From: Haliotis rufescens
Taxonomy: Eukaryota
Assembly: GCF_023055435.1 (NCBI RefSeq)
Contig: NW_025963813.1
Coordinates: 25,420,001 to 25,484,000, forward strand
Reading direction: 5' to 3'
DNA length: 64,000 nt
Positions within the stretch are counted from its first letter, which is position 1. The number at the start of each line of letters is the position of its first letter. Shown here one piece after another: positions 3,036-63,490 of the stretch. Under the pieces are notes generated by a model. That model worked only from the letters and a program-made list of their open reading frames with translations, did not search any database and had not been told where the DNA came from. The position numbers and the translations under genes were made by a program.

Positions 3036-4616
3036 GCCACAGCAAGTTGGAAAATACACCAACACATGTATTTGATATACCAAATACTTACTGTTTATCA
3101 GATGACATCATACAGCAATTTAGAAAAATGGGAATTCTGTGAGCAAATTGTAGAGATATTATTGCAGTCTACGACTTGTCTGAAGCACATGTCTTGTGAA
3201 ATAAATGTCTTCTGGCCTAGCAAGATTAGCTATTATACTGGTAATAATTTTAAGACTAAAATATCAAGTTTGGGCCAGTCGACTTAACATTTTGGCACAA
3301 AGTGACAATGGAAGGATCATCTATCAGTACCACCTGTATTCCGGGTCAAAAGTATAAATTCTGCAACCACTTTTTGATAATTTTGCACACAATTCTGTGA
3401 ACTTTTAAGCCTGGTTTTCGTGTTGCACCTGTTTGACTTGTGGCTGGCATGTTTCGGACAAACTTATTCATGCCTAGTATAGCTTATTAAAGTGAATCTG
3501 GCTATCACTAATGTAAACATATAGACGAGTTCACTTCAAAAAGAAATCTGGATATTGATTCCATTTAACTATTTTTCAAAACGTAAAATGCTTAAAGATT
3601 GATTGTAATTTTTTTTCCATGTAACACAAACGCCTCAAATAATTATTTGGAATGATTTAATTAATACAATGCACAATTCAGATAATGACTGTTCGTTTCA
3701 GCAAACTTATGCAACCTTTACACATTTAAAAACATCGCTCAATCTGTAAGTTAGAATGCTGTACATTTCTGCTTGAGTGGACATTTCTGCAAATATTCCG
3801 TGACCGCAGAATCACAAAATACAGCGGGGACTGATCCTTACAAAATGCGATCATCATAGGCGTGTATCTACAGTGGACAATGGCGAACCATGGACAATGG
3901 TCAAGATGTTTACAACAGACAGGCAGACAGCATGCCATGACACTGGCTCACTTGAACCTTCTTCCGTTCAGGTGAGTTGAAAATGGCTGACCACCCTCAA
4001 TGCAAAACCATTGTGTTCACATCACTTGCAAGCCAAATTGTTTTACTACTACACCCGTAGAGCAAAGCATAAAATGATGGAGATATGAGCTGCTCTACAG
4101 ACTTACAATAAATTCCACAAGGTCAATATAAATTCTTAAACAAGAAATTACAGAGAAATAAACTAAAAGCAAACAAAACATCAATAACCAAACAAAAGAT
4201 GTTAGTCAACCCAAAATACAAATAAAAAACAATTATCTTTAAAGAGATTTCCCGAGATATATCTGACAATGATATTAGCTAGAATAAAGCACTACAGTTA
4301 AAAGCCCAAGCTAAGCTATGCATAATATGACTACAGGACTATGGTAGACCACCCATCATTGCCAAAAGTCCAAATGGAAATGTTACCTGTGAGATATTTT
4401 CAGATATCAAAGTAACTTATATCAATCTCTAATTTAACAGATAGATGAATGATATATCCTATGATATCATGAGAATAAATTATCCATATCCATGAGAATA
4501 TGATCCAATCACATATAATAAGTTTATGCAGATAATATTGATAGAAACTGAGGATATTAAACTGAAAAAAGGACTACTTGGCCCCCATATCAGTGTGTTT
4601 CTCCCCTCCGACTCAC

Positions 4617-7575
4617 CAGCCAGCCCTCTGTCACTTTCCTCAACATGGGATTTCCTTTCTTTCTGTGGGGACTGCTGGACAATCTGACCTTCAGAGTCAT
4701 CTGGGAATCTTTCACGTTGGCCATTATCCTCATACGTTATGTCTGCAAACTGATGGAATCTGCCTGAATAGCCATAGTCCTTACTCGGTTTACTTCTGTC
4801 CTGTAATTCTTTCTGATATCTTTGTTTTTTCTTTTGTTTCCTGGACTGTTTTATTTTATGAGAGTCACTGCTAGCAGCATCTCCATCATATTTCTGATCC
4901 TGATCATGAAAGCCTCCTTCTACAAAATGTGGACTGTCCTCTGCATACTGGAAATTAGTCATATTACCATCCCTTTCACCACAATCCTTCTTCTTGTGCT
5001 TCTTCAATTTGTCTTTCTTCTTGAAAGGAACATCAACCTGCTCTTCCCACCGGCCCTCTCTGGGCCCTCCTTCAGGACACCATCTGTCTTGATACTGAGC
5101 ATGCATGTCATCCACGTCCTGAAACCTTTCATCTTCTCTTGTCTGGTTCCCATAACTGCTTTTCTTGTTCATTTTCTTCTTATTGTCCTGTCTTCTACCA
5201 CCAGCGCCAACACTGTTTACAAAACTACTGTAGCAGTCAGTCTCAACATGTCGTGTCCCATCTCCTGTGGCAGTAATTGTCAGATTCATGAACCCTCTGT
5301 CCTGCACAGTTTCAAATGACCCGCTATCTTCAAGCATATGCATACTCTGATTAGAGGACTCGGACTCAGAATGAGATCTTCTGACATCTTGCGTAGAATA
5401 TTCTCCTGGCTTTTGTCCACTATGACTGGAGGAATCTGATCTGTCTGTCCTTGACCTCCTGAATTCCCTTGATCCCCGCGCTCGCCCCCTTCCTCTTCCT
5501 CTCCTGCTACCCTCATCAGAAACTTGACCTCTACCACGACCTCTGGTCCTTCTCTGATTCCTTATTCTGTATCTCTCTTCATTATTATCTTTATCATCAT
5601 CATCAACATCATCCATAAACTTGCCTGACATCCCAGTGTTGTCATAATAAACATGCCTTGAACTGTTACCATCATCTAATTCATTCCTAAAATATGCCAG
5701 TGCACCTTCTACAAGAGCATCCTCTTCTCTACTTCTCTCATGCCTATCAAATCTATTGAACTTTTTACCCTCCCTCTTTCTCCTGCCAACCTGATGCCGC
5801 AGATCCCCTGGGTCCTCATCTACACTCCCATCATCAAAATCCTGAAGTTGTTCCACGTGCTCCTCGTCAGCGGCGTCTCTCGCAGGGAAGTCTTTGTTCT
5901 GCCTCTTTTTCTTCTTCCTGTTCTTCTTTCCTGGTTTAGTATTTCCTGCAGCAGCATCCTCTCCTCCCTGTTCCTCCCCCTCCCCTTTCACCTCCCCTTT
6001 CACCTCCCCCTCCCATTTCACCTCCCCCTCCCCTTTCACCTCCCCCTCCCCTTTCACCTCCCCCTCCCCTTTTACCTCCCCCTCCCCTTTCACCTCCCCC
6101 TCCCCCTCCCCTTTCACCTCCCCCTCCCCTTTCACCTCCCCCTCCCCTTTCACCTCCCAGTCCACACTTTTCTCTGTGGTCTTCCTCAGCAGATCACTGT
6201 AACCCATTCCCGGAGGATTCCTTGACCCTCTACCAGACCTTTTCCGGACACATTTTCCTGGTGAAACAGATCTGACACTGCTTGAAGACTTTGGTCTTAC
6301 ATCGCTATCAGCACCTACAACAGCTTCCTCCAGTTCACCTTCTCCACAAGTGTTGTGCTTTTCTTCAATTTTCTTTTCTGGTGTAAAACCATCCAGTGTT
6401 AGAAGTGTTTCACTTTGAATTTGTTTTGCAGAATCTGATATGTTTATCTTGTCAGTATGTGAGGACTCTATTTGTTTTAATTCAGTTGTGTTCTCTGTGA
6501 CAAGTTCTTTGGCTTTGCCCTCTTCAACAGGAAGTATTCTCAAGGCATCCACCTTGGAGTCACACAAAACATTGACTTCGTCTCTGGCATCAGGAACATA
6601 ATCTGGTTGTTGGCTCTCCTGAAGTAAAAGGGTGTCAGAAATGATTTCAATCTCAGATTCCTCATTCATTTTAGTCCCCACCATGACCGACGTCGTCTCC
6701 CCTGCAGATTCATTGAGTGCTGCATCCTTTGTACTGGACCTGACTTCATCCCCATCACATGCAGACGCAGCAGCAGGAATGTGGAGATCAGTTGTCGTCG
6801 CGGGCCCAGTTCCAAAGGTCCCTTCTGCTTCCACATCCACATCATGTCCAACATCAGCAGGTAATAGCGATGTTGAAGAATGTATATCAATCTTGGTGAC
6901 ACTGTGCATGACTGTGCATGTTTGTTCTGATGATGGAGGGCAATGAGGGTCAAACTGGGCAGATGTGTCTGGTGCAGCACCATCACCCTGTGTAACCTGG
7001 TCTGTGGTGACACCATCAGTGACAATCACTTCTTCTCCACTGTTGCCCTCACACTTCTCTTCATCCCTTACTTCCTCTCTTCCTGAGTCTTCCGTCTCTA
7101 GACCATCACCTTCCTTACCATCCATTTCTTCACTTCTTAAAATTGTAGGCTGATCATCTACTATTTCTTCTGTAACAGTATGTGGTTGTGATCCACCTGC
7201 GGCACAAATGTTGTTATTACCCCGGCATTCTACATCGGCAGTGTTAGTTGCATCAACAGAACTCACAACAGGGTTATCTCCCTTAGCATGCACGTCACAG
7301 TTATGGTCCTCAGGTCCATGCAATAGGGTTGTGTGTCCATGCAAACTTGTGGTTTCAGAGTTACTGGTTGATCCATCATCAACCACATCAGACATCAGAT
7401 CATCATTACTGTCCTTACCTGATCTTGCTGATGTATCCAGCTGGGATTTACCTGAGACATCTTGGATATTTTTCCCTGTCTTGCTTGACTCTCTAATACT
7501 GATAGATTTAAGTTGCTCCTCCACATCTTCAACATCAGCTATCACTTCTGGCTGGTCACTTTCAGAGGATGCCAT
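4617..7575 (-). CDS. Large first coding exon (~986 codons) of an unidentified, probably disordered acidic/Arg-Gly/Lys-rich protein
   Basis: 1033-aa ORF. Acceptor ttttttcag| at 7615/7614, an in-frame TAA upstream of ATG 7575 (tccATGG), and a strong donor G|GTGAGT at 4617/4616. The ORF tail beyond the donor turns hydrophobic and AT-rich, i.e. intronic. Contains NLS-like KKNRKKKKR and RGRGRG tracts. Confidence 0.85.
5969..6160 (-). repeat. Coding 18-bp tandem repeat (GEVKGE)n, ~10 copies
   Basis: cacctccccctcccctttt-type units on the + strand. The translation shows repeated GEGEVK. Confidence 0.95.
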
Positions 7576-7839
7576 GGACACTTCTGGATCTTATCTTGTT
7601 GACACTTAAACAGTCTGAAAAAAAGAACAGTCAATATTTAATAGAACTACAAGGCTTTGCCACTCACCTGAATTTAGGATTTACTACATAATGACAACAA
7701 AGGGTTATCAACTCAACTCATAGCGTATTCCAGTGAGTTATTTTATAATCAACAGCCAAATATGATTTGTTTCTAAAATGTCAGGAAGACAAAATTTAAA
7801 ATGTAGATGTAACATGCTTTATCCATGTGAAAAGCAGAT

Positions 7840-9260
7840 AGCTAGCCAGCATACACGTAGAAATGGGACAATCTATGAAGCTAGCCAGCATACACGTAGA
7901 AATGGGACAATCTATGAAGCTAGCCAGCATACACGTAGAAATGGGACAATCTATGAAGCTAGCCAGCATACACGTAGAAATGGGACAATCTATGAAGCTA
8001 GCCAGCATACAGGTAGAAATGGGACAATCTATGAAGCTAGCCAGCATACAGGTAGAAATGGGACAATCTTTGAAGCTAGCCAGCATACACGTAGAAATGG
8101 GACAATCTATGAAGCTAGCCAGCATACAGGTAGAAATGGGACAATCTATGAAGCTAGCCAGCATACACGTAGAAATGGGACAATCTATGAAGCTAGCCAG
8201 CATACAGGTAGAAATGGGACAATCTATGAAGCTAGCCAGCATACACGTAGAAATGGGACAATCTATGAAGCAAGCCATCATACAGGTAGAAATGGGACAA
8301 TCTATGAAGCTAGCCAGCATACAGGTAGAAATGGGACAATCTATGAAGCTAGCCAGCATACAGGTAGAAATGGGACAATCTATGACTCTAGCCAGCATAC
8401 AGGTAGAAATGGGACAATCTATGACGCTAGCCAGCATACACGTAGAAATGGGACAATCTATGAAGCTAGCCAGCATACTGGTAGAAATGGGACAATCCAT
8501 AAAACAAGCCAGCATACAGGTAGAAATGGGACAATCTATGAAGCTAGTCGGCATACAGGTAGAAATGGGACAATCTATGACGCTAGCCAGCATACACGTA
8601 AAAAAAATGGGACAATCTATGAAGCTAGCTGGCATACAGGTAGAAATGGGACAATCTATGACGCTAGCCAGCATACAGGTAGAAATGGGACAATCTATGA
8701 AGCCTGCTAGCATATAGGTAGAAATGGGACAATCTATGAAGCAAGCCAGCATACACGTAGAAATGGGACAATCTATGAAGCCTGCTAGCATACAGGTAGA
8801 AATGGGACAATCTATGAAGCTAGCCAGCATACAGGTAGAAATGGGACAATCTATGAAGCTAGCCAGCATACACGTAGAAATGGGACAATCTATGAAGCTA
8901 GCCAGCATACACATAGAAATGGGACAATCTATGAAGCTAGCCAGCATGCACGTAGAAATGGGACAATCTATGAAGCTAGCTGGCATACACGTAGAAATGG
9001 GACAATCTATGAAGCTAGCCAGCATACAGGTAGAAATGGGACAATCTATGAAGCAAGCCATCATACACGTAGAAATGGGACAATCTATGAAGCTAGCCAG
9101 CATACAGGTAGAAATGGGACAATCTATGAAGCTAGCCATCATACAGGTAGAAATGGGACAATCTATGAAGTTAGCCATCATACAGGTAGAAATGGGACAA
9201 TCTATGAAACTAGCCAGCATACACATGGAAATGAGACCTTGTATGAAGCTAGCCAGCATA
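7840..9260. repeat. 39-bp minisatellite (~36 copies)
   Basis: Unit gctagccagcatacacgtagaaatgggacaatctatgaa. It explains the long periodic ORFs on both strands. Confidence 0.97.
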
Positions 9261-9282
9261 CTTTGTTTGTTTGTTTATTTAA

Positions 9283-22082: not shown

Positions 22083-22832
22083 TCACTCCTGTGTCTGCCC
22101 CTGTTCGTCTTCACAGGCAGCATCAGACGTCCACAGTGTCAGGTTGTCACGCAGGAGTTGCATTATAAGTGAACTGTCCTTATATTCCTCACTGCTAAGT
22201 TGATCTATCTCTCCTATGGCGTCATCGAAGGCTTCCTTAGCCAAAGCACATGCTTTGTCTGGTGAATTTAGAATTTCATAAAAGAAAACAGAAAAGTTCA
22301 GTGCCAAGCCTAAACGGTTAGGATGTGTTTTATCCATTTTTTCCTTTGCGATTTTGTATGCTTCTTCATAAGCATGTTGAGCTTTCTGCTGGACCTCCGT
22401 CTTGCTGTCGCCTTCGGAGAACTCAGCAATATACCTGTAGTAGTCGCCTTTCATTTTCAGGTAAAATACTTTTGCTGCTTCGTCCTCTGCTTTCTCGATG
22501 AGGTGCTTATCCAATAATTCCAAAACAACGTTACATGTCTTATTCAGTTCTTTCTCTATACTTTGTCGAAACTCCTTGGCAATTTCCTTCTTCCTATCCG
22601 CTGTTTCTGGCTTGTTTTCGATCATACAAACAACCCTCCATGACGATCTTCTAGCGCCGACAACATTCTTAAATGCCACTGACAGCAGATTTCGCTGATC
22701 GGCGGTTAGCGGTTTCTGATCACGCTCTGTCACTAGTCTCATCGCCTCGGCCATATCGTCGTACCTTTCAGCTTGCTCAGCCAGTCTGGCCTTGTACACC
22801 AACTCATCAAACTCTTTCGCCTGGTCAGTCAT
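22083..22832 (-). CDS. 14-3-3zeta: 14-3-3 protein (non-epsilon / zeta-like), intronless, 249 aa
   Basis: Motifs [78 protein letters not shown]. The first ATG is at 22832. Exact orthology is uncertain. Confidence 0.97.
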
Positions 22833-22919
22833 TCTGGCAATCTCTACCAGAAGTGTCAAAGTGTGAAGCGATCGGCGATTCTTCAACAACTAGATTCGAT
22901 TTGAAAAAGGAAGGGCCTG

Positions 22920-29544: not shown

Positions 29545-30172
29545 AGTGCACTTGACGTGTCAATAAAGGGAACATCACGCTATAGAGCGAACACCGGTGT
29601 GCTTGTCGTGTTAATACAGGGGGACCTCACGCTATAGAGCGAATACTGGTGCACTTGCCGTTGGATTACCGGGGACATCACGCTATAGAGCAAACATTGG
29701 TGCAATTGCCGTGTTAATACAGGGGACGTCACGCTATAGAGCGAACACTGGTGCACTTGACGTGTTAATACGGGGGACGTCACGCTATAGAGCAAACATT
29801 GGTGCAATTGACGTGTTAATACAGGGGACGTCACGCTATAGAGCGAACACTGGTGCACTTGACGTGTTAATACGGGGGACGTCACGCTATAGAGTGAACA
29901 CTGGTGCACTTGACGTGTTAATACGGGGGACGTCACGCTATAGAGCGAACACTGGTGCACTTGACGTGTTAATACGGGGGACGTCACGCTATAGAGCGAA
30001 CAATGGTGCACTTGACGTGTTAAAACGGGGGACGTCACGCTATAGAGCGAACACTGGTGCACTTGACGTGTTAATACGGGGGACGTCACGCTATAGAGCG
30101 AACACTGGTGCACTTGACGCGTTAATACGGGGGACGTCACGCTATAGAGCAAACACTGGTGCACTTGACGTG
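29545..30172. repeat. 51-bp CpG-rich minisatellite (~12 copies)
   Basis: Unit cacttgacgtgttaatacgggggacgtcacgctatagagcgaacactggtg. Confidence 0.97.
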
Positions 30173-31119
30173 AAGTCGGGAGTTGGAACAAATTACCCAT
30201 ACCAGAGCGCGAATGTACTTTTTGTCATCTATCCGATATTGCAGTTGAATACCATTACAATTATTTGATTCCGTATTTAAACTCAGAACGTAAGATATAT
30301 CTACCAACATGTGATTCAGCTAGACCGAATATATATTATTTTTTCAATCTCTCTTTCAATGTACAAAACTCGGAATCATGAAAAACTCAGCAAATTCTGT
30401 AATATTGTCATGAAATATGTTAAATCCTCATGCAAACCCTCTTACGCCATCATGCAATTTGTATTTGTCGTGCGCCGAGTATGTCGGCCTGGGAGCAAAT
30501 AAAGTTATGTTCTTTTATGTCACACAACTGGTTGTTGCTGAGAACACTCAACATTCTGATGCTCATTGGTGTCTTGAAATAATCCCACTCTCACCAACCC
30601 TTATCACATTCAAAGAATTTATTTATAAGAAGGAAGGTGCGTTCCTTTCTTCGTGCGACGAGGCGTTAAATACATGTGAATAACTGCATCTGCATGACTC
30701 GGCGACGAGTGTAGCGACACAAGTGCTTGTAACGTTGTACACGCTGTGTGTCACGTGCTGACCCCGGACAACCTGATATGGTCATAACGTGCTGCCTGGG
30801 TCTCGTCATATAATCTGGAGCAATGTCGTTAATTAGAAATAGCTGATTATATAAGAAAACGTGCGATGCAGCTGATTAGTGCGCTTATGAGTGTTTCACA
30901 TACAACCGACATCGCTAACCCCCCCCCCCCCCCCCCCCCATCTTCCTGTTACAAAGTACAGATTGTTAACAATCAGTTTTAGATAATATGTCGATGAGTC
31001 ACCTGACCCAAATATACAAGCAGGTGAAAACTACATCACAGTATCCATTGAATAGGCCTGCGCCTATATCTCCCTCCTTCAGCCACGAGAGTCACCTTGA
31101 GTACCGGGTCTAGTATCCC

Positions 31120-34100
31120 CCTACACAGGTGTCTCAACAGTCGAGTCATGCTGCTTTATACGTTGTCACCTTGACAACCGGGGCTTGTCTCCTAACACAC
31201 AGGTGTCTCAACAGTCGAGTCATGCTGCTTTATACGTTGTCACCTTGACAACCGGGGCTTGTCTCCTAACACACAGGTGTCTCAACAGTCGAGTCATGCT
31301 GCTTTATACGTTGTCACCTTGACTAAAGGGGCTAGCCTCCTAACACACAGGTGTCTCAACAGTCGAGTCATGCTGCTTTATACGTTGTCACCTTGACAAC
31401 CGGGGCTTGTCTCCTAACACACAGGTGTCTCAACAGTCGAGTCATGCTGCTTTATACGTTGTCACCTTGACAACCGGGGCTTGTCTCCTAACACACAGGT
31501 GTCTCAACAGTCGAGTCATGCTGCTTTATACGTTGTCACTTTGACTACAGGGGCTTGTCTCCTAACACACAGGTGTCTCAACAGTCGAGTCATGCTGCTT
31601 TATACGTTGTCACCTTGACAACCGGGGCTTGTCTCCTAACACACAGGTGTCTCAACAGTCGAGTCATGCTGCTTTATACGTTGTCACCTTGACTAAAGGG
31701 GCTAGCCTCCTAACACACAGGTGTCTCAACAGTCGAGTCATGCTGCTTTATACGTTGTCACCTTGACAACCGGGGCTTGTCTCCTAACACACAGGTGTCT
31801 CAACAGTCGAGTCATGCTGCTTTATACGTTGTCACCTTGACAACCGGGGCTTGTCTCCTAACACACAGGTGTCTCAACAGTCGAGTCATGCTGCTTTATA
31901 CGTTGTCACCTTGACTAAAGGGGCTAGCCTCCTAACACACAGGTGTCTCAACAGTCGAGTCATGCTGCTTTATACGTTGTCACCTTGACAACCGGGGCTT
32001 GTCTCCTAACACACAGGTGTCTCAACAGTCGAGTCATGCTGCTTTATACGTTGTCACCTTGACAACCGGGGCTTGTCTCCTAACACACAGGTGTCTCAAC
32101 AGTCGAGTCATGCTGCTTTATACGTTGTCACTTTGACTACAGGGGCTTGTCTCCTAACACACAGGTGTCTCAACAGTCGAGTCATGCTGCTTTATACGTT
32201 GTCACCTTGACAACCGGGGCTTGTCTCCTAACACACAGGTGTCTCAACAGTCGAGTCATGCTGCTTTATACGTTGTAACAATGACTACAGGGGCTAGTCT
32301 CCTAACACACAGGTGTCTCAACAGTCGAGTCATGCTGCTTTATACGTTGTCACCTTGACTAAAGGGGCTAGTCTCCTAACACACAGGTGTCTCAACAGTC
32401 GAGTCATGCTTCTTCATACGTCACCTTGACTACAGGGGCTAGTCTCCTAACACACAGGTGTCTCAACAGTCGAGTCATGCTGCTTTATACGTTGTCACCT
32501 TGACAACCGGGGCTAGTCTCCTAACACACAGGTGTCTCAACAGTCGAGTCATGCTGCTTTATACGTCACCTTGACTACAGGGGCTTGTCTCCTAACACAC
32601 AGGTGTCTCAACAGTCGAGTCATGCTGCTTTATACGTTGTCACCTTGACTACAGGGGCTAGTCTCCTAACACACAGGTGTCTCAACAGTCGAGTCATGCT
32701 TCTTCATACGTCACCTTGACTACAGCGGCTAGTCTCCTAACACACAGGTGTCTCAACAGTCGAGTCATGCTGCTTTATACGTTGTCACCTTGACTACAGC
32801 GGCTAGTCTCCTAACACACAGGTGTCTCAACAGTCGAGTCATGCTGCTTTATACGTTGTCACGTTGACTACAGGGGCTAGTCTCCTAACACACAGGTGTC
32901 TCAACAGTCGAGTCATGCTGCTTTATACGTCACCTTGACTACAGCGGCTAGTCTCCTAACACACAGGTGTCTCAACAGTCGAGTCATGCTGCTTTATACG
33001 TTGTAACATTGACTACAGGGGCTAGTCTCCTAACACACAGGTGTCTCAACAGTCGAGTCATGCTTCTTCATACGTCACCTTGACTACAGCGGCTAGTCTC
33101 CTAACACACAGGTGTCTCAACAGTCGAGTCATGCTGCTTTATACGTTGTCACCTTGACTACAGGGGCTAGTCTCCTAACACACAGGTGTCTCAACAGTCG
33201 AGTCATGCTTCTTCATACGTCACCTTGACTACAGCGGCTAGTCTCCTAACACACAGGTGTCTCAACAGTCGAGTCATGCTGCTTTATACGTTGTAACATT
33301 GACTACAGGGGCTAGTCTCCTAACACACAGGTGTCTCAACAGTCGAGTCATGCTTCTTCATACGTCACCTTGACTACAGCGGCTAGTCTCCTAACACACA
33401 GGTGTCTCAACAGTCGAGTCATGCTGCTTTATACGTTGTCACCTTGACTACAGGGGCTAGTCTCCTAACACACAGGTGTCTCAACAGTCGAGTCATGCTT
33501 CTTCATACGTCACCTTGACTACAGGGGCTAGTCTCCTAACACACAGGTGTCTCAACAGTCGAGTCATGCTGCTTTATACGTTGTCACCTTGACTACAGGG
33601 GCTAGTCTCCTAACACACAGGTGTCTCAACAGTCGAGTCATGCTGCTTTATACGTTGTCACCTTGACTACAGGGGCTAGTCTCCTAACACACAGGTGTCT
33701 CAACAGTCGAGTCATGCTGCTTTATACGTTGTCACCTTGACTACAGGGGCTAGTCTCCTAACACACAGGTGTCTCAACAGTCGAGTCATGCTTCTTCATA
33801 CGTCACCTTGACTACAGCGGCTAGTCTCCTAACACACAGGTGTCTCAACAGTCGAGTCATGCTGCTTTATACGTTGTAACATTGACTACAGGGGCTAGTC
33901 TCCTAACACACAGGTGTCTCAACAGTCGAGTCATGCTTCTTCATACGTCACCTTGACTACAGGGGCTAGTCTCCTAACACACAGGTGTCTCAACAGTCGA
34001 GTCATGCTGCTTTATACGTTGTCACCTTGACTACAGGGGCTAGTCTCCTAACACACAGGTGTCTCAACAGTCGAGTCATGCTGCTTTATACGTTGTCACC

Positions 34101-34190
34101 TTGACTACAGGGGCTAGTCTCCTAACACACAGGTGTCTCAACAGTCGAGTCATGCTTCTTCATACGTCACCTTGACTACAGCGGCTAGTC
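31120..34190. repeat. 74/71-bp minisatellite (~42 copies) with higher-order structure
   Basis: Unit cctaacacacaggtgtctcaacagtcgagtcatgctgctttatacgttgtcaccttgacaaccggggcttgtct. Confidence 0.97.
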
Positions 34191-34650
34191 TGTCTCACAG
34201 ATAACGTATGTAATATATTTGTCTGCATATCTGTCCATATGTATGTTACAGGTGTTTCTTGAAGAGGTCATACAAAAGTGATAATATGAAACGTGAACAT
34301 AATAATAATACCAATGACGACGATGGCAACAATACGAATATAAGGCGTCATCTGTTTATGGTGTGCAAGACACCTGGTGTCAGTGGTCTATGCCCAAAGC
34401 AGCACATTTGTGTCCCGGCCAAGGGATCAGTGTGCCTTCAGACTGCAGGCTCAGCGCTCAGGGCTAACGCTGTTGGTGAAGCTCGGGACTTGCGTCAGCA
34501 CGCGAGGCCTTGGGCTCAAAATTGAAGTCCACCAGTTCACATTGTGACCCATATGAACGTGATTACCCATTGACCCCACTGTTTAAATGGTAGCATAATG
34601 CAGTTAAAAAGGAAAACGCCATGCATTGCATCAGCTCACAAATCTTATAG

Positions 34651-34806
34651 ATGACATTCGCGGAACTGAAGACAATTACACGGCATATTTTCTTCTCAAC
34701 CATGCTGAAGTTGAAAAAAGTGCAGAACCATCCTCATGCCGTGAAGCCATTGTATCGGAAAGAGGACACATAACAGTGGGCCGACTGCCGGTGAAGATGG
34801 GTACAG
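34651..34806 (+). other. Orphan exon-like segment (156 nt, phase 1-1, open frame)
   Basis: cttatag|AT...ACAG|GTTATG; translation DDIRGTEDNYTAYFLLNHAEVEKS...VKMGT. No partner exons identified. Confidence 0.3.
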
Positions 34807-35567
34807 GTTATGTCTCAGACAGGGTATACGCATCACAGTGGGGCGACTGCCGGTGAAGATGGGTACAGGTATGTCTCAGACAGGGTATACGCATCACAGT
34901 GGGGTGACTGCCCTTGAAGATGGGTACAGGTATGTCTCAGACAGGGTATACGCATCACAGTGGGGTGACTGCCCTTGAAGATGGGTACAGGTATGTCTCA
35001 GGCAGGGCATACGCATCACAGTAGGACGACTGCCCTTGAAGATGAGTACAGGTATGTCTCAGGCAGGGTATACGCATCACAGTGGGGCGGCTGCCCTTGA
35101 AGATGGGTACAGGTATGTCTCAGACAGGGTATACGCATCACAGTGGGGCGACTGCCCTTGAAGATGGGTACAGGTATGTCTCAGACAGGGTATACGCATC
35201 ACAGTGGGGCGACTGCCCTTGAAGATGGGTACAGGTAAGTCTCAGACAGTGTATACGCATCACAGTGGGGCGACTGCCCTTGAAGATGAGTACAGGTATG
35301 TCACAGACAGGGTAAACGCATCACAGTGGGGCGACTGCCCTTGAAGATGGGTACAGGTATGTCTCAGACAGGGTATACGCATCACAGTTGGGCGACTGCC
35401 CTTGAAGATGGGTACAGGTATGTCTCAGACAGGGTATACGCATCACAGTGGGACGACTGCCCTTGAAGATGGGTACAGGTAAGTCTCGGACAGGGTATAC
35501 GCATCACAGTGGGGCGACTGCCGGTGAAGATGGGTACAGGTATGTCTCAGACAGGTTATACGCATCA
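34772..35567 (+). repeat. 61-bp minisatellite (~13 copies), each unit with a CAG|GTATGT-type donor
   Basis: Unit catcacagtggggcgactgcccttgaagatgggtacaggtatgtctcagacagggtatacg. Confidence 0.95.
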
Positions 35568-41100: not shown

Positions 41101-42794
41101 TGAGTATTATTATTGACCTTACTGAATGCTTCTTAGGAGGATTTGGTAATTTCTTGATGGTGAAAGTTCTCACGCTGAAATGGATAACATGCCAAGCCTG
41201 TCTGTATCTTTTTCTGTGTTTCCCATCTCCCGCCCACCCTGAATTTCCATTCTGACATGAAATAATTAAAAAGATTTTGTCTCACAATTTTCCCTGCCAC
41301 TGGAATATTATGCCCCAGTGTGATAGCAAAATAAGCACTACCATTCCACGCTCCTAAAAACACCAGGTCAGCCTGATCTTTCTTCAGCTATGTTTATTAA
41401 AAATTCATTTACGAAGCAAAGTGACTCGATTCATCGTCATAAATTAATTAGTTCGTTAAACTTTAAACTGTCACAAAATAAGTTACACAATTAATGAGAA
41501 ACAGAGTTGTTTATATTTTTAATTTTTATTTTATTTCGGCTCTCTGCCAGCTCTCTTGATGGTTGAGATTTGAGATGAGAAACACAAAAAAATATGAATG
41601 GTGCAAGCCTAGATCTGATCTCAACAAAAATGGACAATATCATCTGAATAGCAGTATATAAGGGAGACAACTCATTCAGACTTAGTGCAGCTGAGTGCTT
41701 GATGTTTGTTTATCCAGTATTTATTGCTGGTAGGTTTGTCATGTGTCTATTCATATGTGTTTATTTCGTTCACATTGAGGAAGTAAGTATTTATGACCTG
41801 TTTATTTTATCCTTATTTTTCACATTTGTCATGATTCATCCATACCAGGAATATGAGAAAAGGAAGAAATTCATGTCATAAATAATATCTAAATAACAGG
41901 TTCAACACAGATCTATTTATGCTGTAACTGATATATATTTAGGATAACAAGTCTTTGACAACACTCACACTTTGCACAAATTGTAACAAGGAATTTTATT
42001 TACAAGAAAGTGTACTATTCAATCAACTCCTATCATTTCTTACTATGAGCAGAGTTGCAGATGACAGTCCGTCCCACCAATTTCACCAAGGACAGGTGAC
42101 ATACAAAATCTACTTACCGTGTCAATGGTCATATTTTTTTCTGTCAATTAGTAATCGCCATGATGTGTATTGTGTATAAAACTAAACAACCCTAATTCAA
42201 GTTCAAAGTTATAGACAACAGAAAAAGATCTGCATAAAATGTTTGCATTGGCAACTTTTGACAAGGACAAGATTTTCGAGTAGCCAGTTCTGTGGTCTGT
42301 TCAAAATTTATTTTAAGTCTGCAACACTGCTGAGAGTATAAAATGACACCCATATTTTCACATGCAGATGACTGTTTGGTCATCTGAAATGTGATTTGGA
42401 TTTGTTAATTGCATTGAAACTTTTAATTTTGAACTGTACTTGTAGGCAACATATTTCATGAATATGGAAATGGAAGGTCTCAGCTGTACAGTGTTTCTAG
42501 TGTATGCAGGATACTGACCAGTAAATTATGGCTTGGGCCAGTGAAGTCAAGGCTAGTATTGGTTTTCTGAAGAAACATGGTGTACTGTTTGAGTTGTTTA
42601 CATTATCTGAGCCTTACAGTTTACATTCCTTCAGTTAGACTTAAGTCTTAATGTAAGTGGAACACCAAGCTAAACTCTGATGTGTAGACATGTATATAAA
42701 GTGATGTGACATTGATCGTGGATTTCTGTACTTCTGTACGAACAGATGAGTTGTCATTGTGGTAGTTTCAACTGTTTGGTATTTCTGATAATCT

Positions 42795-43150
42795 CAAATG
42801 CTCTGCACCATGTGGTTGTAGTGTGTCAAATGCTCTGCACCATGTGGTTATAGTGTGTCGATTGCTCTACACCATGTGGTTGTTGTGTGTCAAATGCCCT
42901 ACACCATGTGGTTGTTGTGTGTCAAATGCCCTACACCATGTGGTTGTTGTGTGTCAAATGCCCTACACCAAGTGGTTGTTGTGTGTCAAATGCTCTACAC
43001 CATGTGGTTGTTGTGTGTCAAATGCTCTACACCATGTGGTTGTTGTGTGTCAAATGCCCTACACCATGTGGTTGTTGTGTGACAAATGCTCTACACCGTG
43101 TGGTTGTTGTGTGTCAAATGCCCTACACCATGTGATTGTAATGTGTCAAC
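42795..43150. repeat. 32-bp minisatellite (~11 copies)
   Basis: Unit tcaaatgccctacaccatgtggttgttgtgtg. Confidence 0.95.
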
Positions 43151-43966: not shown

Positions 43967-44522
43967 AGATTTGGAAAATATAGTTATATATAGCCATGGA
44001 AAATGTTGCATTATTACATCATCATCATCATCATCATCATCATCTTCATATTTTCAGTTTCTGGTTTCATTTAATTCCCTTGCCAAGGCAGGGTTAGAAC
44101 AAAATTGAAAAGATTTACTAGACTGGGTAAAGATAATATATTAGTTTTGCATCACTGTCTTCACTAACTATGGCAGTTGTTCCTGATGTTTCAGAAATTA
44201 GGATAGGTGATGTTGGAATCTGCTGTACCAAATGCTGTAATATTTTGTATGAGTGTTTGTAATGTAATAGATAGAGGACAAGTGGGAGTAGTTCAATGAG
44301 ACTTATAGGTACAGTTGCAAGCAGCCATATTGAAAATGTTTGTACTAGCACCGAATACAGTTATTACATATTTAGAAATAGTGCATATGCTTACTTAGTG
44401 AAATATCCTCAAATTGGTTCAGAGTAGGCTGATATTGTATAACAAATATATTGTTCAGCTTCTAAACAACACATTTACAATGTGACTTTTCCAACTTCAG
44501 TTTGTCCTCCCAACACTCCAAT

Positions 44523-45554
44523 ATGGCCGAGGAAAAGAGACGCAGCCCTCTCAAGGTGGCTGCAGTGGTGGCCATGTATTGGAGCATCTCTATATCCATG
44601 GTGTTTATCATGAAACATTTGCTGAGTGGTAGCTATGGCAACCAGGACCTCACCATCTTCGTCACATGGTACCAGAGCGCTTCTGTAGTTGTGCTCATCT
44701 TGGCTATGTCATCAGCATCAAGACTCCTTAAGTTTGGATTGAGTATTCCATCCCTGGACAAAGAAACTATCCTAAACAGTGACATGCTATCACTTAGCTT
44801 TTCATTTGTGATCAGTCTCACCATGAACAATCTGATGTTGAAACATATCAGTGTGTCGTTTTATCAAGTTGCACGATCACTGACGCTTATCTTCTCTATA
44901 CTGTTGTCATTCTGTATGTTGGCAAAAGCTCCCTCTTACAAGGTAGTGTTGGCCTGTTTGCTCATCATCGCTGGGTTTGTTATTGGGGTGGACCAAGAAG
45001 AGGCTTCAGGTAGTATCACAATTTGGGGAATTATCTACGGACTACTGGCAAGTCTTACATCAGCTTTAACAGGTATATATTTCAAGAAGGGGGAATATGC
45101 AGTCGGTGGAAGTGCTCTGAAACTGGCTTACATCAATAACTTCAACAGCATGATGATAATATTTCCACTAGTGTTGAGCACAAATCAGCTGTCACATATC
45201 ATGAACTCGGACATAGCTACCAACCCACAGCTGTGGTTGTTCCTAACAGCTTCAGGAGCTCTGAGTCTGGCAATTGGTTGGGCAAGTGCATTACAGATTC
45301 GCTACACTTCCCCAGTTACTCATCAGATCAGCATCAACGCTAAGTCCATTACTCAGACAGTCATCGCAATCTTATGGAACAACGAACTTAAAACTGTATT
45401 CTGGTGGTTTGGCAATGTCCTTGTGTTGTTTGGAATAGGCATCTACACCTTTGCTAAATATCAAGAGAGCAAGACCCAAAAGGTTGAGACTTCACCAATG
45501 CCCACAAAGAACAATTCCAGTAGCAGCTCTTCACCTGAGAAGCCAACTGTGTGA
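44523..45554 (+). CDS. SLC35C1: GDP-fucose transporter-like nucleotide-sugar transporter (SLC35C1 family), 343 aa, single coding exon
   Basis: Motifs YWSISISMVF, IFVTWYQ, NNLMLKHISVSFYQVARSLT, GFVIGVDQE, LQIRYTSPVTH, QTVIA, WW.GN match SLC35C1; about 10 TM segments. Acceptor ttccaacttcag| at 44500/44501, ATG at 44523. Divergent, so possibly a paralog. Confidence 0.92.
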   Translation: MAEEKRRSPLKVAAVVAMYWSISISMVFIMKHLLSGSYGNQDLTIFVTWYQSASVVVLILAMSSASRLLKFGLSIPSLDKETILNSDMLSLSFSFVISLTMNNLMLKHISVSFYQVARSLTLIFSILLSFCMLAKAPSYKVVLACLLIIAGFVIGVDQEEASGSITIWGIIYGLLASLTSALTGIYFKKGEYAVGGSALKLAYINNFNSMMIIFPLVLSTNQLSHIMNSDIATNPQLWLFLTASGALSLAIGWASALQIRYTSPVTHQISINAKSITQTVIAILWNNELKTVFWWFGNVLVLFGIGIYTFAKYQESKTQKVETSPMPTKNNSSSSSSPEKPTV

Positions 45555-49813: not shown

Positions 49814-50978
49814 AATGACTAGCTTGAAGTAGTTCGACCACCAGCACTCTGCTAGCTGCCCTTCACAGCAGTGTAAGCAATGACTAGCTTGAAGTAGTTA
49901 GACCACCAGCACTCTGCTAGCTGCCCTTCACAGCAGTGTAAGCAATGACTAGCTTGAAGTAGTTAGACCACCAGCACTCTGCTAGCCGCCCTTCACAGCA
50001 GTGTAAGCAATGACTAGCTTGAAGTAGTTAGACCACCAGCACTCTGCTAGCCGCCCTTCACAGCAGTGTAAGCAATGACTAGCTTGAAGTAGTTAGACCA
50101 CCAGGACTCGGCTAGCCACCTTCACAGCAGTGTAAGCAATGACTAGCTTGAAGTAGTTAGACCACCAGCACTCGGCTAGCCGCCCTTCACAGCAATGTAA
50201 GCAATGACTAGCTTGAAGTAGTTCGACCACCAGCACTCTGCTAGCTGCCCTTCACAGCAGTGTAAGCAATGACTAGCTTGAAGTAGTTAGACCACCAGCA
50301 CTCGGCTAGCCACCTTCACAGCAGTGTAAGCAATGACTAGCTTGAAGTAGTTAGACCACCAGAACTCTGCTAGCTGCCCTTCACAGCAGTGTAAGCAATG
50401 ACTAGCTTGAAGTAGTTAGACCACCAGCACTCGGCTAGCCACCTTCACAGCAGTGTAAGCAATGACTAGCTTGAAGTAGTTAGACCACCAGGACTCGGCT
50501 AGCCACCTTCACAGCAGTGTAAGCAATGACTAGCTTGAAGTAGTTAGACCACCAGCACTCTGCTAGCCACCTTCACAGCAGTGTAAGCAATGACTAGCTT
50601 GAAGTAGTTCGACCACCAGCACTCTGCTAGCCACCTTCACAGCAGTGTAAGCAATGACTAGCTTGAAGTAGTTCGACCACCAGCACTCTGCTAGCTGCCC
50701 TTCACAGCAGTGTAAGCAATGACTAGCTTGAAGTAGTTAGACCACCAGCACTCGGCTAGCCACCTTCACAGCAGTGTAAGCAATGACTAGCTTGAAGTAG
50801 TTAGACCACCAGGACTCGGCTAGCCACCTTCACAGCAGTGTAAGCAATGACTAGCTTGAAGTAGTTAGACCACCAGGACTCGGCTAGCTGCCCTTCACAG
50901 CAGTGTAAGCAATGACTAGCTTGAAGTAGTTAGACCACCAGCACTCTGCTAGCTGCCTTCACAGCAGTGGAAGCAATG
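49814..50978. repeat. 64/65-bp minisatellite (~18 copies)
   Basis: Unit aatgactagcttgaagtagttagaccaccagcactctgctagctgcccttcacagcagtgtaagc. Confidence 0.97.
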
Positions 50979-51917
50979 AGATATTGATCAGTTCCGGCTC
51001 CAGACAGGATACCTGGTTATTACACACAATTCTCAAACAACTTTACTCACAAGGGAAATCAGTTTTTATTATTTTTTGTGCAAACCAACCGAGATTTACG
51101 TACTGACATGGCTGCAGCCCCTATGCCAACATTGTACAAGTAAATATTCTTTTTGTGACATGTTTGTTTATTATCTTTTGAATGCCAAATAAGGTAGTAA
51201 GGTGTTGTTTGGCTATATAGGTTTTATTGTAATGCCGGTTCTTGTTTTATATCAAAGCCACAGCATTTTATATTTTCATTGATATGCAGACACTATTTTT
51301 TACATACTTTTTGTTATACCTACATATCAGGCAGAAGCCGGATAGTTTAAGGCACCTTGTGGTTTAAGCATGTACTCTTTTATGCTGTTTTTTTAGCTCC
51401 ATGATTCTTCACAAGAATAGAGTCTGGGAAGCCCATTCTTGACAACTTAACCATGATGTTTATGGCAGTCTATGTTTGGCACCTCTAACCAAATAAACAC
51501 AAATGGGGATTTAATTAGTTTTTAGCATGCACATTTCAAAGCAATTCACAGTGCAATTTCAGATGTGATTTGTTTTGTTTTATGCTATGTCATAACTACT
51601 TGTATGGAACATCTTGACATGGCACACTTCAGTGGGGAGACTCTTAGAGTATTTCAAATAATCATAAAGCACTGGCATGATGAAAATGCTAAAAGGACTT
51701 TACTTTCTGTGCAGACTGAACCAGATCCACAACCTGACAGCATATTCTGCAGGTATCAAACTTACTAGGTATGCTCTGCTCCAACTCCAACAGCCATCCA
51801 TGCGGACATGGGGCTCATTCCTTTGCCGCTGTTAAGGAAAGAACCGTCTGGTAAGAAGTATGCAAATGATGATGATGATGATGATGATGATGTCATTTCT
51901 GCTGTGGAGGACTTTGA

Positions 51918-52600
51918 CACCAGCAGGAGGAAGTCTTCTACCCCAGCAGGAGGAAAGTCTTCTACCCCAGCAGGAGGAAGTCTTCTACCCCAGCAGGAGG
52001 AAGTCTTCTACCCCAGCAGGAGGAAGTCTTCTACCCCAGCAGGAGGAAAGTCTTCTTCCCCAGCAGGAGGAAAGTCTTCTACCCCAGCAGGAGGAAGTCT
52101 TCTACCCCAGCAGGAAGAAGTCTTCTACCCCAGCAGGAGGAAAGTCTTCTACCCCAGCAGGAGGAAGTCTTCTACCCCAGCAGGAAGAAGTCTTCTACCC
52201 CAGCAGGAGGAAAGTCTTCTACCCCAGCAGGAAGAAGTCTTCTACCCCAGCAGGAAGAAGTCTTCTACCCCAGCAGGAGGAAAGTCTTCTACCCCAGCAG
52301 GAAGAAGTCTTCTACCTCAGCAGGAGGAAAGTCTTCTACCCCAGCAGGAGGAAAGTCTTCTACCCCAGCAGGAGGAAAGTCTTCTACCCCAGCAGGAGGA
52401 AGTCTTCTACCCCAGCAGGAGGAAAGTCTTCTACCCCAGCAGGAAGAAGTCTTCTACCCCAGCAGGAGGAAAGTCTTCTACCCCAGCAGGAGGAAGTCTT
52501 CTACCCCAGCAGGAAGAAGTCTTCTACCCCAGCAGGAGGAAAGTCTTCTACCCCAGCAGGAGGAAAGTCTTCTACCCCAGCAGGAGGAAGTCTTCTACCA
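51918..52600. repeat. 23/24-bp minisatellite (~29 copies)
   Basis: Unit ccccagcaggagga(a)agtcttcta, preceded by (GAT)n at 51866-51892. Confidence 0.97.
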
Positions 52601-54037
52601 GAGCAGGTTCCAGGCTCTCCAGCGGCTGGCACAAGGGTGTGGACCTCGGGGAGTATTTCGTGGAAATATAATTAGCAACCAACTCCAAACACAGTCCGTC
52701 GTAGTTAAACTCAGGAAGCCCCCTCTTGTAGCTTTGAGATACAGTGGATGTTAACCAAAGGGTGATTCCACTGTGTACTTTTAAGCCATCTGTGTCAACA
52801 GTTGGAAATATTTTCTGATTTGTTTATAGTTGAGATCTGTTCTATTTATGCTGGTGTGCTTAAACATGTATTGAGGTTACTAGTTTGGTGTAGTTACTTT
52901 CTGAGGAAGATCAATATTACAGCAGTTTTAAAATTTTGTTTTAGTCCTACAGTGAAGTAACAGTATGTATAAGATTGTAATGGGATTTGTAGGACACAAT
53001 GACGCAATGAAATGGGAATGTTGGATTGCGAATTACTGAAATCTGTTTGTCATTATGAAATACTTCACCACTCTGACATTCCACTCGGCCTTGTAGCCTC
53101 CATGTACTCATGTACATTCTCATATTGTTTTTGGTTTCTTGTTTAATGTTTATGTATTCATTGGTTGCATATATGTGATAAGCTGTTATTGTAGTTTGGT
53201 AGACGTTACAATGGGTATCAGGCAGAAGATAACAAAATATCAGATCAAATTCTTTGTTAATGAAGGTTTGTATAAAAGATGTATATTGATATGGTATGTT
53301 TTCATATGGCTATTCTGTGAAAAGAATTTCTGGTCCACAGGAATTCTAAATATATTTGTTTCACTAAAATTGTATCACAAGATATGCACATTTTGCAATT
53401 CAGTGATCAATTGTGAAAACAAGTGATAGCTGGACTGTGATTGTGGCCCAACTGACAAGCCATTCCTGCCTGTTGGTGGTTGTGCAGGATGTGTTCCCAC
53501 AGGGATGTGTTCAGGGAGGGTGGGAACAAAATCATAATTTATTTATACTGTCTTGTCCCAAATGGAAACTTGATGTATACCGGGTATACGTTCAAATATA
53601 TCCTGTCTATGGTGCATTGTTGATGTTAGATCTGGTTGTAGTTTACCTTTGTTTCCTAGCAGGTGTGTTGTAGGCTATTGAAACTCCATGACCTGTGATA
53701 GTGAGTCTTACTGCTTTCTCCAGTTTGATAAAGTAAACATTTTGAGTTTGAAATTAAATAGGATATTATAAATCTCAGTGAAAAGAAAGGGACATTTTTT
53801 CTAAATTACAGCTGAACTGCATATTATCTACCTCAAGTTAAAATGACATTCATTGAGTTGCATTAAAATTGATGCATTAAAATTATTATTATCAGCACAC
53901 TTAAAAAAGTATGTATCTATTTGTAAAGTATGATTTGAAATAACAAGTATTTGGTGTCATGTCTGCCACACAATTTAATGGTACCGGTACCGGTAGTTGA
54001 GGGTTGTTCTTAGAAGCAGGTTTGCACTATTTGCCTA

Positions 54038-56076: not shown

Positions 56077-56655
56077 GGCATCTACATCTGGATGGATCTG
56101 ATGGAAACAAGGGAACACATCTACATCTGGATGGACCTGGTGGAAACAAGGGAACACATCTACATCTGGATGGATCTGATGGAAACAAGGGAACACATCT
56201 ACATCTGGGTGGACCTGATGGAAACAAGGGAACACATCTACATCTGGATGGATCTGATGGAAACAAGGGAACACATCTACATCTGGGTGGACCTGATGGA
56301 AACAATAGAATACACCTACATCTGGGTGGACCTGATGGAAACAAGGGAACACATCTACATCTGGGTGGACCTGATGGAAACAAGGGAACACATCTACATC
56401 TGGATGGATCTGATGGAAACAAGGGAACACATCTACATCTGGATGGATCTGATGGAAACAAGGGAACACATCTACATCTGGGTGGACCTGATGGAAACAA
56501 TGGAACACACCTACATCTGGGTGGACCTGTTGGAAACAAGGGAACACATCTACATCTGGGTGGACCTGTTGGAAACAAGGGAACACACCTACATCTTGAT
56601 GGACCTGATGGAAACAAGGGAATACATCTGGGTGGACCTGATGGAAACAGGGGAA
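56077..56655. repeat. 39-bp minisatellite (~15 copies)
   Basis: Unit catctacatctggatggatctgatggaaacaagggaaca. Confidence 0.97.
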
Positions 56656-56791
56656 CGGTAGGTTAGCCCTGTGGTTAAAGTGTTCTCTTTTCACGCCAGG
56701 GTTGATTCCTCACATGTGTTCAATGTGTGAAACCCTGGTATTGCTTGAATATGGCTAAATGTGGAGTAAAACAATACCCACTCACTCACTC
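56655..56791 (+). mobile_element. Degenerate copy of the 14841-15017 SINE
   Basis: gtggttaaagtgttc...gattcctcacatg...caatgtgtgaa...actcactcactc. Confidence 0.7.
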
Positions 56792-61119: not shown

Positions 61120-61254
61120 ATGGAGAAGAAACATAAAGAAATTTTGATAAAGCAGCGTGCCAACCTTGTGGAAAACATCAACCCCAGAGATGGCTTGTTT
61201 ACCCAGCTGATATCCCAGAAAGTCCTCAACCCTAGAAGTGTTCGTACCATCCAG
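61120..61254 (+). CDS. CARD-domain protein (caspase-2/RAIDD-like), first coding exon (N-terminal half of the CARD)
   Basis: MEKKHKEILIKQRANLVENINPRDGLFTQLISQKVLNPRSVRTIQ is a typical CARD start. Phase-0 donor CAG|GTTAGT. Confidence 0.88.
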
Positions 61255-61552
61255 GTTAGTGCTGTTATGTGCACTCTGTCATCTGTAGTGCTGCAAGATA
61301 TGTAGTGTCCTTGGGCCCTAGAGGTGTTTTGTTCAGTTTCATTCAAGGACCTAAACAATTCGAAATATTAGATTCTTAACATAAAGGCAAGACAAGAACC
61401 CTTCGACACTTTTCTGTCTTGAGCAAACAAAGGTGGCAATTCTTGTGTGTACGTACACTGTTACTATTGCTTTGAGTTAATGAACAAAAGTCAGCTTCAG
61501 TATTTGCAGAAATCAAACACGAACAATTTATGTAGGAAATTTGAGATTCCAT

Positions 61553-62240
61553 CTGTTGTGTTTCTGTTTCAATACGATCGTCCCCCTGTCCAGCAGATTA
61601 TCTAAGTGTTCCTTGTGTTTCTGTTCCAGTACAATTGTCCCCCTGACCAGCAGATTATCCTTGTGTTTCTGTTCCAGTACAATCGTCCCCCTGACCAGCA
61701 GATTATCCTTGTGTTTCTGTTCCAGTACAATTGTCCCCCTGACCAGCAGATTATCCTTGTGTTTCTGTTCCAGTACAATCGTCCCCCTGTCCAGCAGATT
61801 ATCTAAGTGTTCCTTGTGTTTCTGTTCCAGTACAATTGTCCCCCTGACCAGCAGATTATCCTTGTGTTTCTGTTCCAGTACAATCGTCCCCCTGACCAGC
61901 AGATTATCCTTGTGTTTCTGTTCCAGTACAATTGTCCCCCTGACCAGCAGATTATCCTTGTGTTTCTGTTCCAGTACAATTGTCCCCCTGACCAGCAGAT
62001 TATCCTTGTGTTTCTGTTCCAGTACAATCGTCCCCCTGACCAGCAGATTATCCTTGTGTTTCTGTTCCAGTACAATCGTCCCCCTGTCCAGCAGATTATC
62101 CTTGTGTTTCTGTTCCAGTACAATCGTCCCCCTGACCAGCAGATTATCCTTGTGTTTCTGTTCCAGTACAATCGTCCCCCTGTCCAGCAGATTATCCTTG
62201 TGTTTCTGTTTCAGTACAATCGCCCTCCTGACCAGCAGGT
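61553..62240 (+). repeat. 48-bp (two units 57-bp) minisatellite composed of the 3' splice site plus first exon codons, ~14 copies
   Basis: Unit attatccttgtgtttctgttccag|tacaatcgtccccctgaccagcag. Confidence 0.97.
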
Positions 62241-62731
62241 GGAGGAGCTTCTCAATGTTCTTCCAACAAGAGGCCCTGAAGCTTTCTCCAAGTTCTGTGA
62301 AGCACTGAAAGAAGATGATCAAGAACATGTGCTGGACTTCCTTAAGTGTGATGAAACTAAAAGTGAAACAACGAATGATGGAACGACACCAACTTCAGAA
62401 TCGGGCGAGTGTTCACGTAAACGAGCTCATTCTCCGTCCCCCCAGGTCTTGTGTATCAAGGACAAGGATAGTCAGAATTTAATGATCAAGTATTTAGCCA
62501 GTGAGGAACACTCAGATGCAGAGAAGAAGAGACAAATGTTTACAGATGGACACAAAGGTTATGAACAGGGAGAGCCACGGCACACATTCAAACACTGGAT
62601 ATCTGAACCTGGGGTCGTTCACATTGGTCGGTTTGTGCCGGTGGACCACCTTGAAAACTACATGGCCGCCCCATCAAGCTTGTCAGGGGGCAGATGTACC
62701 CCCTATGATCTTTCCCGATGTGATAGCCTAG
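62215..62731 (+). CDS. CARD-domain protein, second coding exon (C-terminal half of the CARD plus linker)
   Basis: YNRPPDQQVEELLNVLPTRGPEAFSKFCEALKEDDQEHVLDFL contains the LL..LP.RGP.AF..F..AL CARD signature. Phase-0 acceptor and phase-1 donor G|GTGAGA. Confidence 0.88.
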
Positions 62732-63235: not shown

Positions 63236-63490
63236 CTTAGAATAGGTCTTCAGCAACCCATGCTTGCCGTAAAAGGCGACTATGCTTGTCGTACGAGATG
63301 ACTAACGGGATCGGGTGGTCAGGCTCGTTGACTTGTTGATGCATGTCATCGATCCCAATTGCGTGGATCGATCCTCATGATGTCAATCACAGGATTGTCT
63401 GGTCCAGACTCGATTATTAACAGACCGCCGTCATATAGCTGGAATATTGCGGAGTGCGGCGTTAAACTACAAAAAAAACACAAAAAAAAA
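63236..63490 (+). mobile_element. V-domain-type SINE, intronic
   Basis: ttagaataggtcttcagcaacccatgcttg...gggatcgggtggtcaggctcg...ggaatattgcggagtgcggcgttaaac, then an A-rich tail. Confidence 0.85.

Follow-up and report, generated by a model that had tools for sequence, protein, structure and literature searches.

The intron that divides the CARD domain of a caspase-2-like gene of Haliotis rufescens ends in a tandem array of copies of its own 3′ splice junction, which raises the question of which of these near-identical acceptors makes the protein, and whether the remaining copies have any role of their own. The window analysed here is a stretch of 64,000 nt (G000:C35:25420001-25484000), to which all plain positions in this text refer, and it was read together with further stretches of the same contig. 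The array is probably a minisatellite of the ‘mirage’ type, in which the unit next to the exon makes the protein and the 12 upstream copies are intronic by-products.

The host gene is encoded on the + strand. Its first coding exon has a coding part of 45 codons (61120..61254), which translates from an ATG at 61120 into CARD helices 1-3 and ends in phase 0 at 61254, where the gttagt donor follows. The intron that splits the CARD domain is 960 nt long (61255..62214, +; donor CAG/gttagt at 61254/61255), and the exons on either side of it abut in the public protein. Exon 2 (62215..62731, +; acceptor AG at 62213-62214, donor AG/gtgaga at 62731/62732) supplies CARD helices 4-6 and a linker, as judged by identity to that protein, Pfam and the sequence itself; in Pfam, exon 1 covers CARD profile positions 3-34 and exon 2 covers positions 47-82. 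The protein in question, here called P0165, is the public H. rufescens caspase-2-like protein of 538 aa, represented by three XP accessions and retrieved as part of a cluster by a protein search with a Solemya orthologue. It has a CARD at residues 8-88 (Pfam, E 1e-11) and a Peptidase_C14 domain at 291-527 (E 7e-56), and the N-terminal CARD together with a Peptidase_C14 domain bearing a QACRG active site identifies it as a CARD initiator caspase. The 30 kb downstream of the window contain the p20 and p10 exons of the caspase, and with them QACRG; exon translation places the QACRG-bearing exon at L009:3530-3751 (L009 being a contig stretch downstream of the window). All coding exons of the gene were found intact by tblastn with mollusc orthologues.

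Tandem Repeats Finder reports the minisatellite at 61610-62238, with a period of 48, 12.9 copies, 94% matches and a score of 1100. When the copies are listed by their exon-like starts, direct reading of the sequence gives 14 head-to-tail units at 61549..62238 (+), each of 48 nt apart from units 1 and 5, which are variants of 57 nt. In each unit, the terminal 24 nt of the intron (pyrimidine tract and CAG) are joined to the first 24 nt of exon 2. A preliminary description of this locus, made from the letters alone, had likewise defined the unit as a polypyrimidine tract, CAG and the first eight codons of the CARD exon, and the unit table confirms it. The exon-like starts lie at 61573, 61630, 61678, 61726, 61774, 61831 and 61879 (units 1-7) and at 61927, 61975, 62023, 62071, 62119, 62167 and 62215 (units 8-14). 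Units 2-14, 13 in all, have pyrimidines at 14 of the 17 positions from -20 to -4, followed by CAG, so that each of the 13 possible exon starts proposed earlier between 61630 and 62215 is borne out. The most 5′ copy had been called AG-dead, and its acceptor is indeed CAA in place of CAG (61570..61572, +). The 14 units therefore comprise 12 intact decoys, one dead copy and one authentic site, 62215, at which the terminal unit is continuous with exon 2 and forms the authentic junction. Each of the two 57-nt units contains an in-frame TAA, at 61804..61806 (+) in unit 5 and at 61603-61605 in its twin, unit 1. A search of the 1.33-Gb genome showed the caspase-2-like acceptor array to be confined to this one locus.

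Because the spacings between the array acceptors are all multiples of three and exon 1 ends in phase 0, the fate of a transcript spliced to a decoy can be read from the frame. The four decoys at 61630, 61678, 61726 and 61774 (61628..61775, +) would meet the TAA at 61804-61806, and the eight at 61831, 61879, 61927, 61975, 62023, 62071, 62119 and 62167 (61829..62168, +; 313-aa open frame) would stay open, adding 128, 112, 96, 80, 64, 48, 32 and 16 residues, respectively. An exon initiated at a decoy would span 565-1102 nt. The frame consequences set out in the preliminary description were correct in each respect: eight in-frame sites from 61831 to 62167 that would insert one to eight repeat copies (16-128 residues by frame arithmetic), four more 5′ sites that run into the TAA at 61804 in a 57-nt variant unit, and an intact CARD from 62215 only. 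The peptide encoded by the frame-keeping decoys is strongly hydrophobic. The AlphaFold model of P0165, which has a pLDDT of ~90 over the CARD, contains helices at residues 3-11, 13-19, 26-32 and 38-45; residue 45 closes helix 3, and residues 46-49 lie in the loop preceding helix 4. According to this model, decoy use would place a hydrophobic peptide in the loop between CARD helices 3 and 4.

As to which acceptor is used, P0165 matches exon 1 over residues 1-45 and exon 2 over residues 46-217, in both cases with 100% identity, and therefore the public model joins 61254 to 62215. In these comparisons each exon was searched individually, and P0165 served for the analyses of the whole protein. The junction is read straight across in public proteins of H. 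rufescens, H. cracherodii, H. rubra and H. asinina, and two H. rubra isoforms differ at the N-terminus only. P0165 was also compared with 24 mollusc orthologues, including those of three other Haliotis species and 20 further ones, and in the alignment of these 25 mollusc caspase-2 proteins residue 45 is followed by residue 46 with zero columns of insertion. The public cluster for the four Haliotis species contains no protein isoform with a different structure at this junction, a resource built by annotation pipelines that may overlook minor isoforms and NMD targets. The repeat-containing open frame (61807-62730, eight units) had no protein match in a database of 5.8 billion clusters. The canonical junction 61254/62215 rests on the public gene model and on homology, and public proteins and orthologues all point, albeit indirectly, to 62215 as the acceptor in use.

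Over the interval -26..+24, the decoys are equal in quality to the authentic site, from which three differences separate them, and a plausible branch point of its own precedes each decoy by ~20 nt, free of any AG in between. Neither an inverted-repeat search nor an RNA fold of the intron revealed a structure that would hide the decoys. Downstream of the acceptors, over +1..+60, the authentic site has a purine fraction of 0.48 and every decoy one of 0.33-0.35. The authentic acceptor is followed by real exon sequence with a strong donor 517 nt away, whereas a decoy acceptor is followed by the next pyrimidine tract. We infer that the exon-adjacent copy wins through exon definition, because it alone precedes a purine-richer real exon and a strong donor.

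Arrays of this kind have precedents. The name ‘mirages’ was given to tandemly duplicated exon/intron boundaries in amphioxus Adh3 (PMC3087553), and later amphioxus examples involve the globin (BflGb6/BflGb9), troponin C and PGBD5 genes (PMC3087553, PMC3902484); RT-PCR of amphioxus mirage genes showed regular splicing (PMC3087553, PMC3902484). Like these, the abalone array consists of head-to-tail boundary copies that include a splice signal, with the authentic junction at the end. Unlike these, it belongs to a gastropod mollusc and not a cephalochordate, sits inside a CARD domain and has a 48-nt unit that happens to keep frame. Our literature search found reports of mirages in amphioxus only, and none in molluscs.

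Two human genes provide further parallels on the question of splice-site choice. The 37-bp VNTR of F7 intron 7, whose first unit spans the exon boundary, carries 5-9 identical donors, of which the exon-adjacent one alone is used; the pseudo-sites are silent even where they are in frame, and become functional after removal of the authentic site (PMC1557585). The abalone minisatellite similarly spans an exon boundary and yields many near-identical splice sites, but F7 duplicates a donor, not an acceptor, and was tested with minigenes. By analogy with F7 IVS7, the abalone decoys are probably competent but latent, and usable if the authentic AG were lost. In CBS, the c.844_845ins68 allele duplicates the junction between intron 7 and exon 8, and the distal copy is strongly favoured (PMC2630376). 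It is, like the abalone array, a tandem duplication of a 3′ intron/exon junction, but it has two copies and a phenotypic effect, the rescue of a linked mutation. The CBS 31-bp VNTR at exon 13/intron 13, c.1444_1467+7(16_21), is a splice-junction VNTR too, but on the donor side (PMC2630376); it was the example given in the preliminary description. Lievers reportedly linked it to enzyme activity in 2001. Older duplication experiments gave conflicting rules on which copy wins (discussed in PMC1557585). The preliminary description had offered, as an alternative, that the spliceosome skips 12 near-identical decoys; this is the reading that fits, and such behaviour is known for the repeat class (PMC3087553, PMC3902484, PMC1557585, PMC2630376).

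The arrangement probably arose by tandem duplication of a short segment across the 3′ splice junction with which the intron in the CARD region ends, followed by amplification to 14 units through unequal exchange or slippage, with a four-unit, 201-bp step as the latest event. On this reading, the rightmost unit has stayed continuous with the exon and acts as the protein-making acceptor, and the 12 upstream copies lie in the intron and are removed together with it. Within the array, a higher-order repeat (61573..61974, +) consists of two 201-bp four-unit blocks, 61573-61773 and 61774-61974, with a 1/201 difference on block comparison. Because units 1-4 and 5-8 differ at this single base, the blocks indicate a recent four-unit duplication. 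Inner units differ from one another at 0-2 positions. Divergence is greatest in the leftmost and the authentic unit, which share a T at -4, in contrast to the C of the inner units. This is the pattern of concerted evolution within an array with diverged boundary copies, and the abalone edge copies escape homogenisation as do those of the amphioxus globin array (PMC3087553). Among the three differences between the authentic copy and the decoy consensus, both exonic ones are synonymous. Two variants segregate among the decoys and are non-synonymous (R/C, D/V); because both change the encoded residue, the decoys appear to be free of coding constraint, small as these numbers are.

The CARD intron is not the only place on this contig (G000:C35) where acceptors have been multiplied. 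The same caspase gene contains a second acceptor array, recognized from the repeat and by reading of the sequence, with a 46-bp unit repeated 18 times (L010:7908-8738, corresponding to G000:C35:25501908-25502738). Its unit comprises ~36 nt of intron ending in CAG and 9-10 nt from the start of the p10 exon, at L010:8730, and P0165 reads through the last copy. As 46 is not a multiple of three, use of a decoy in this array would shift the frame. A third acceptor array, recognized from its repeats and an open exon-like frame, lies ~13 Mb downstream (L020:2413-2873), with a 73-bp unit in ~6 copies; it duplicates the acceptor and ~24 nt of the exon-like sequence after it, and ends at the acceptor. 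Lastly, a 45-bp unit repeated 43 times, with a 135-bp higher order, carries an acceptor-like ttgtag/GTGGAG in each unit (L021:1687-3987, ~12.7 Mb upstream). With units of 48, 46, 73 and 45 nt, a frame-keeping unit length is not preferred.

Minisatellites make up ~19% of the window, 48% and 22%, respectively, of the two 10-kb stretches that follow it, and ~23% of the 84 kb examined overall. In introns so rich in minisatellites, seed duplications will now and then straddle an exon boundary. On a rough estimate, 0.16 further boundary arrays would be expected by chance in the caspase gene (P ~0.15 for the second one observed), and we therefore claim no enrichment. A shared recombination-type motif (CAGG or chi-like) was considered for the units of ~16 arrays, and its excess was unconvincing.

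Set against these observations is the main proposal of the preliminary description, a splice rheostat that draws on several of the acceptors, the length of the array determining how much intact caspase-2 is made relative to isoforms with a CARD insertion or targeted by NMD. The ingredients are present, with twelve intact decoys of which eight preserve the frame, and VNTRs reportedly can affect splicing in other genes, such as ABCA7 and TERT. However, the predicted isoform is absent from the public proteins of four Haliotis species, P0165 and its three accessions use 62215 only, no orthologue has an insertion, and the sister arrays, with their units of 46 and 73 nt, are incapable of preserving frame. 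By our own estimate, a stop-free 48-nt unit is ~15% likely to arise by chance. The altered residues in the two decoy variants, hence the lack of coding constraint, and the strongly hydrophobic character of the inserted peptide also count against a rheostat, which we find unsupported and consider very improbable.

Noisy leakage is a further reading: the exon-adjacent site would dominate, a few percent of splicing would pass via the decoys, and the array would be mildly deleterious, the products of the four 5′ decoys being cleared by NMD and the in-frame decoys yielding a little defective protein. The decoys closely match the authentic site, and F7 pseudo-sites work once unmasked (PMC1557585), but those same pseudo-sites are unused even at low efficiency while the authentic donor is in place (PMC1557585), and we regard leakage as unlikely. 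Misassembly, finally, might lie behind the length of the array or its existence. The two 201-bp blocks differ by one base only, and one draft genome contained an amphioxus mirage in misassembled form (PMC3087553). The abalone array, however, has internal variants in a definite order, edge copies that have diverged and flanks that are unique; together with the similar arrays elsewhere on the same chromosome-scale contig, this leaves an artefact barely credible. Under the mirage reading, which we prefer, the array would be neutral or slightly costly, and not a regulator.

A broader conjecture is that junction-directed mutational seeding explains the frequent boundary arrays of abalone, and that in-frame arrays measurably lower the output of functional caspase-2 in some alleles. 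We think this improbable. If true, in-frame arrays would be a latent, copy-number-variable source of insertion isoforms or NMD decoys. The caspase gene holds two boundary arrays and possibly a third seeded array. Behind the exon at L009:4301-4432, an array of a 19-bp unit repeated 122 times (L009:4442-6709) starts 10 nt past the donor. This unit is similar to the terminal ~17 nt of the exon and contains a pyrimidine run and CAG, without a GT donor; the array may have been seeded from the exon end, but it does not copy the boundary in the strict sense. Another array, of a 50-bp unit repeated 46 times (L009:1023-3335), lies in the intron that follows the first p20 exon, from ~100 nt downstream of the donor, and its unit includes a donor-like ctgtgagt that is loosely similar to the real donor region.

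As a single locus, the CARD-intron array is an ordinary boundary minisatellite; minisatellites make up about one fifth of this genome. The abundance of mirages in a mollusc widens the phenomenon beyond amphioxus. With 13 near-identical acceptors set against one donor, the array is a natural substrate for the study of 3′ splice-site choice, and an acceptor counterpart of the F7 donor model.

Several other features were noted in the window and on the contig. Further minisatellites in the window, whose units measure 23-145 bp and occur in as many as 72 copies, lie at 834-3035, 7840-9261, 29546-30172, 31091-34191, 34769-35567, 42794-43149, 49814-50979, 51920-52607 and 56079-56656, and donor-like CAGGT motifs occur in several of them. 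The intron after exon 2 contains a SINE-like element of ~165 bp (~63238-63400), which has >40 copies genome-wide at 91-96% identity. Retrotransposon fragments with integrase core, RVT_1 and RVT_2 domains are found in the long caspase intron at L009:8073-9932 (-) and L010:4295-6404 (-), the latter with an internal 156-bp tandem repeat. Three ORFs in the window are intron-less: one for a 14-3-3 protein (22083-22889, -; Pfam E 4e-96), one for a TPT/EamA-type sugar-phosphate or nucleotide-sugar transporter (44502-45554, +; E 4e-13), and one for an acidic, low-complexity protein of 1033 aa with no family (4480-7581, -), which includes an 18-bp coding repeat at 5991-6158. A distant CARD-like match ~10 Mb away (G000:C35:35920002-35920151, -), with 42% identity over 50 residues, may be a candidate paralogue.
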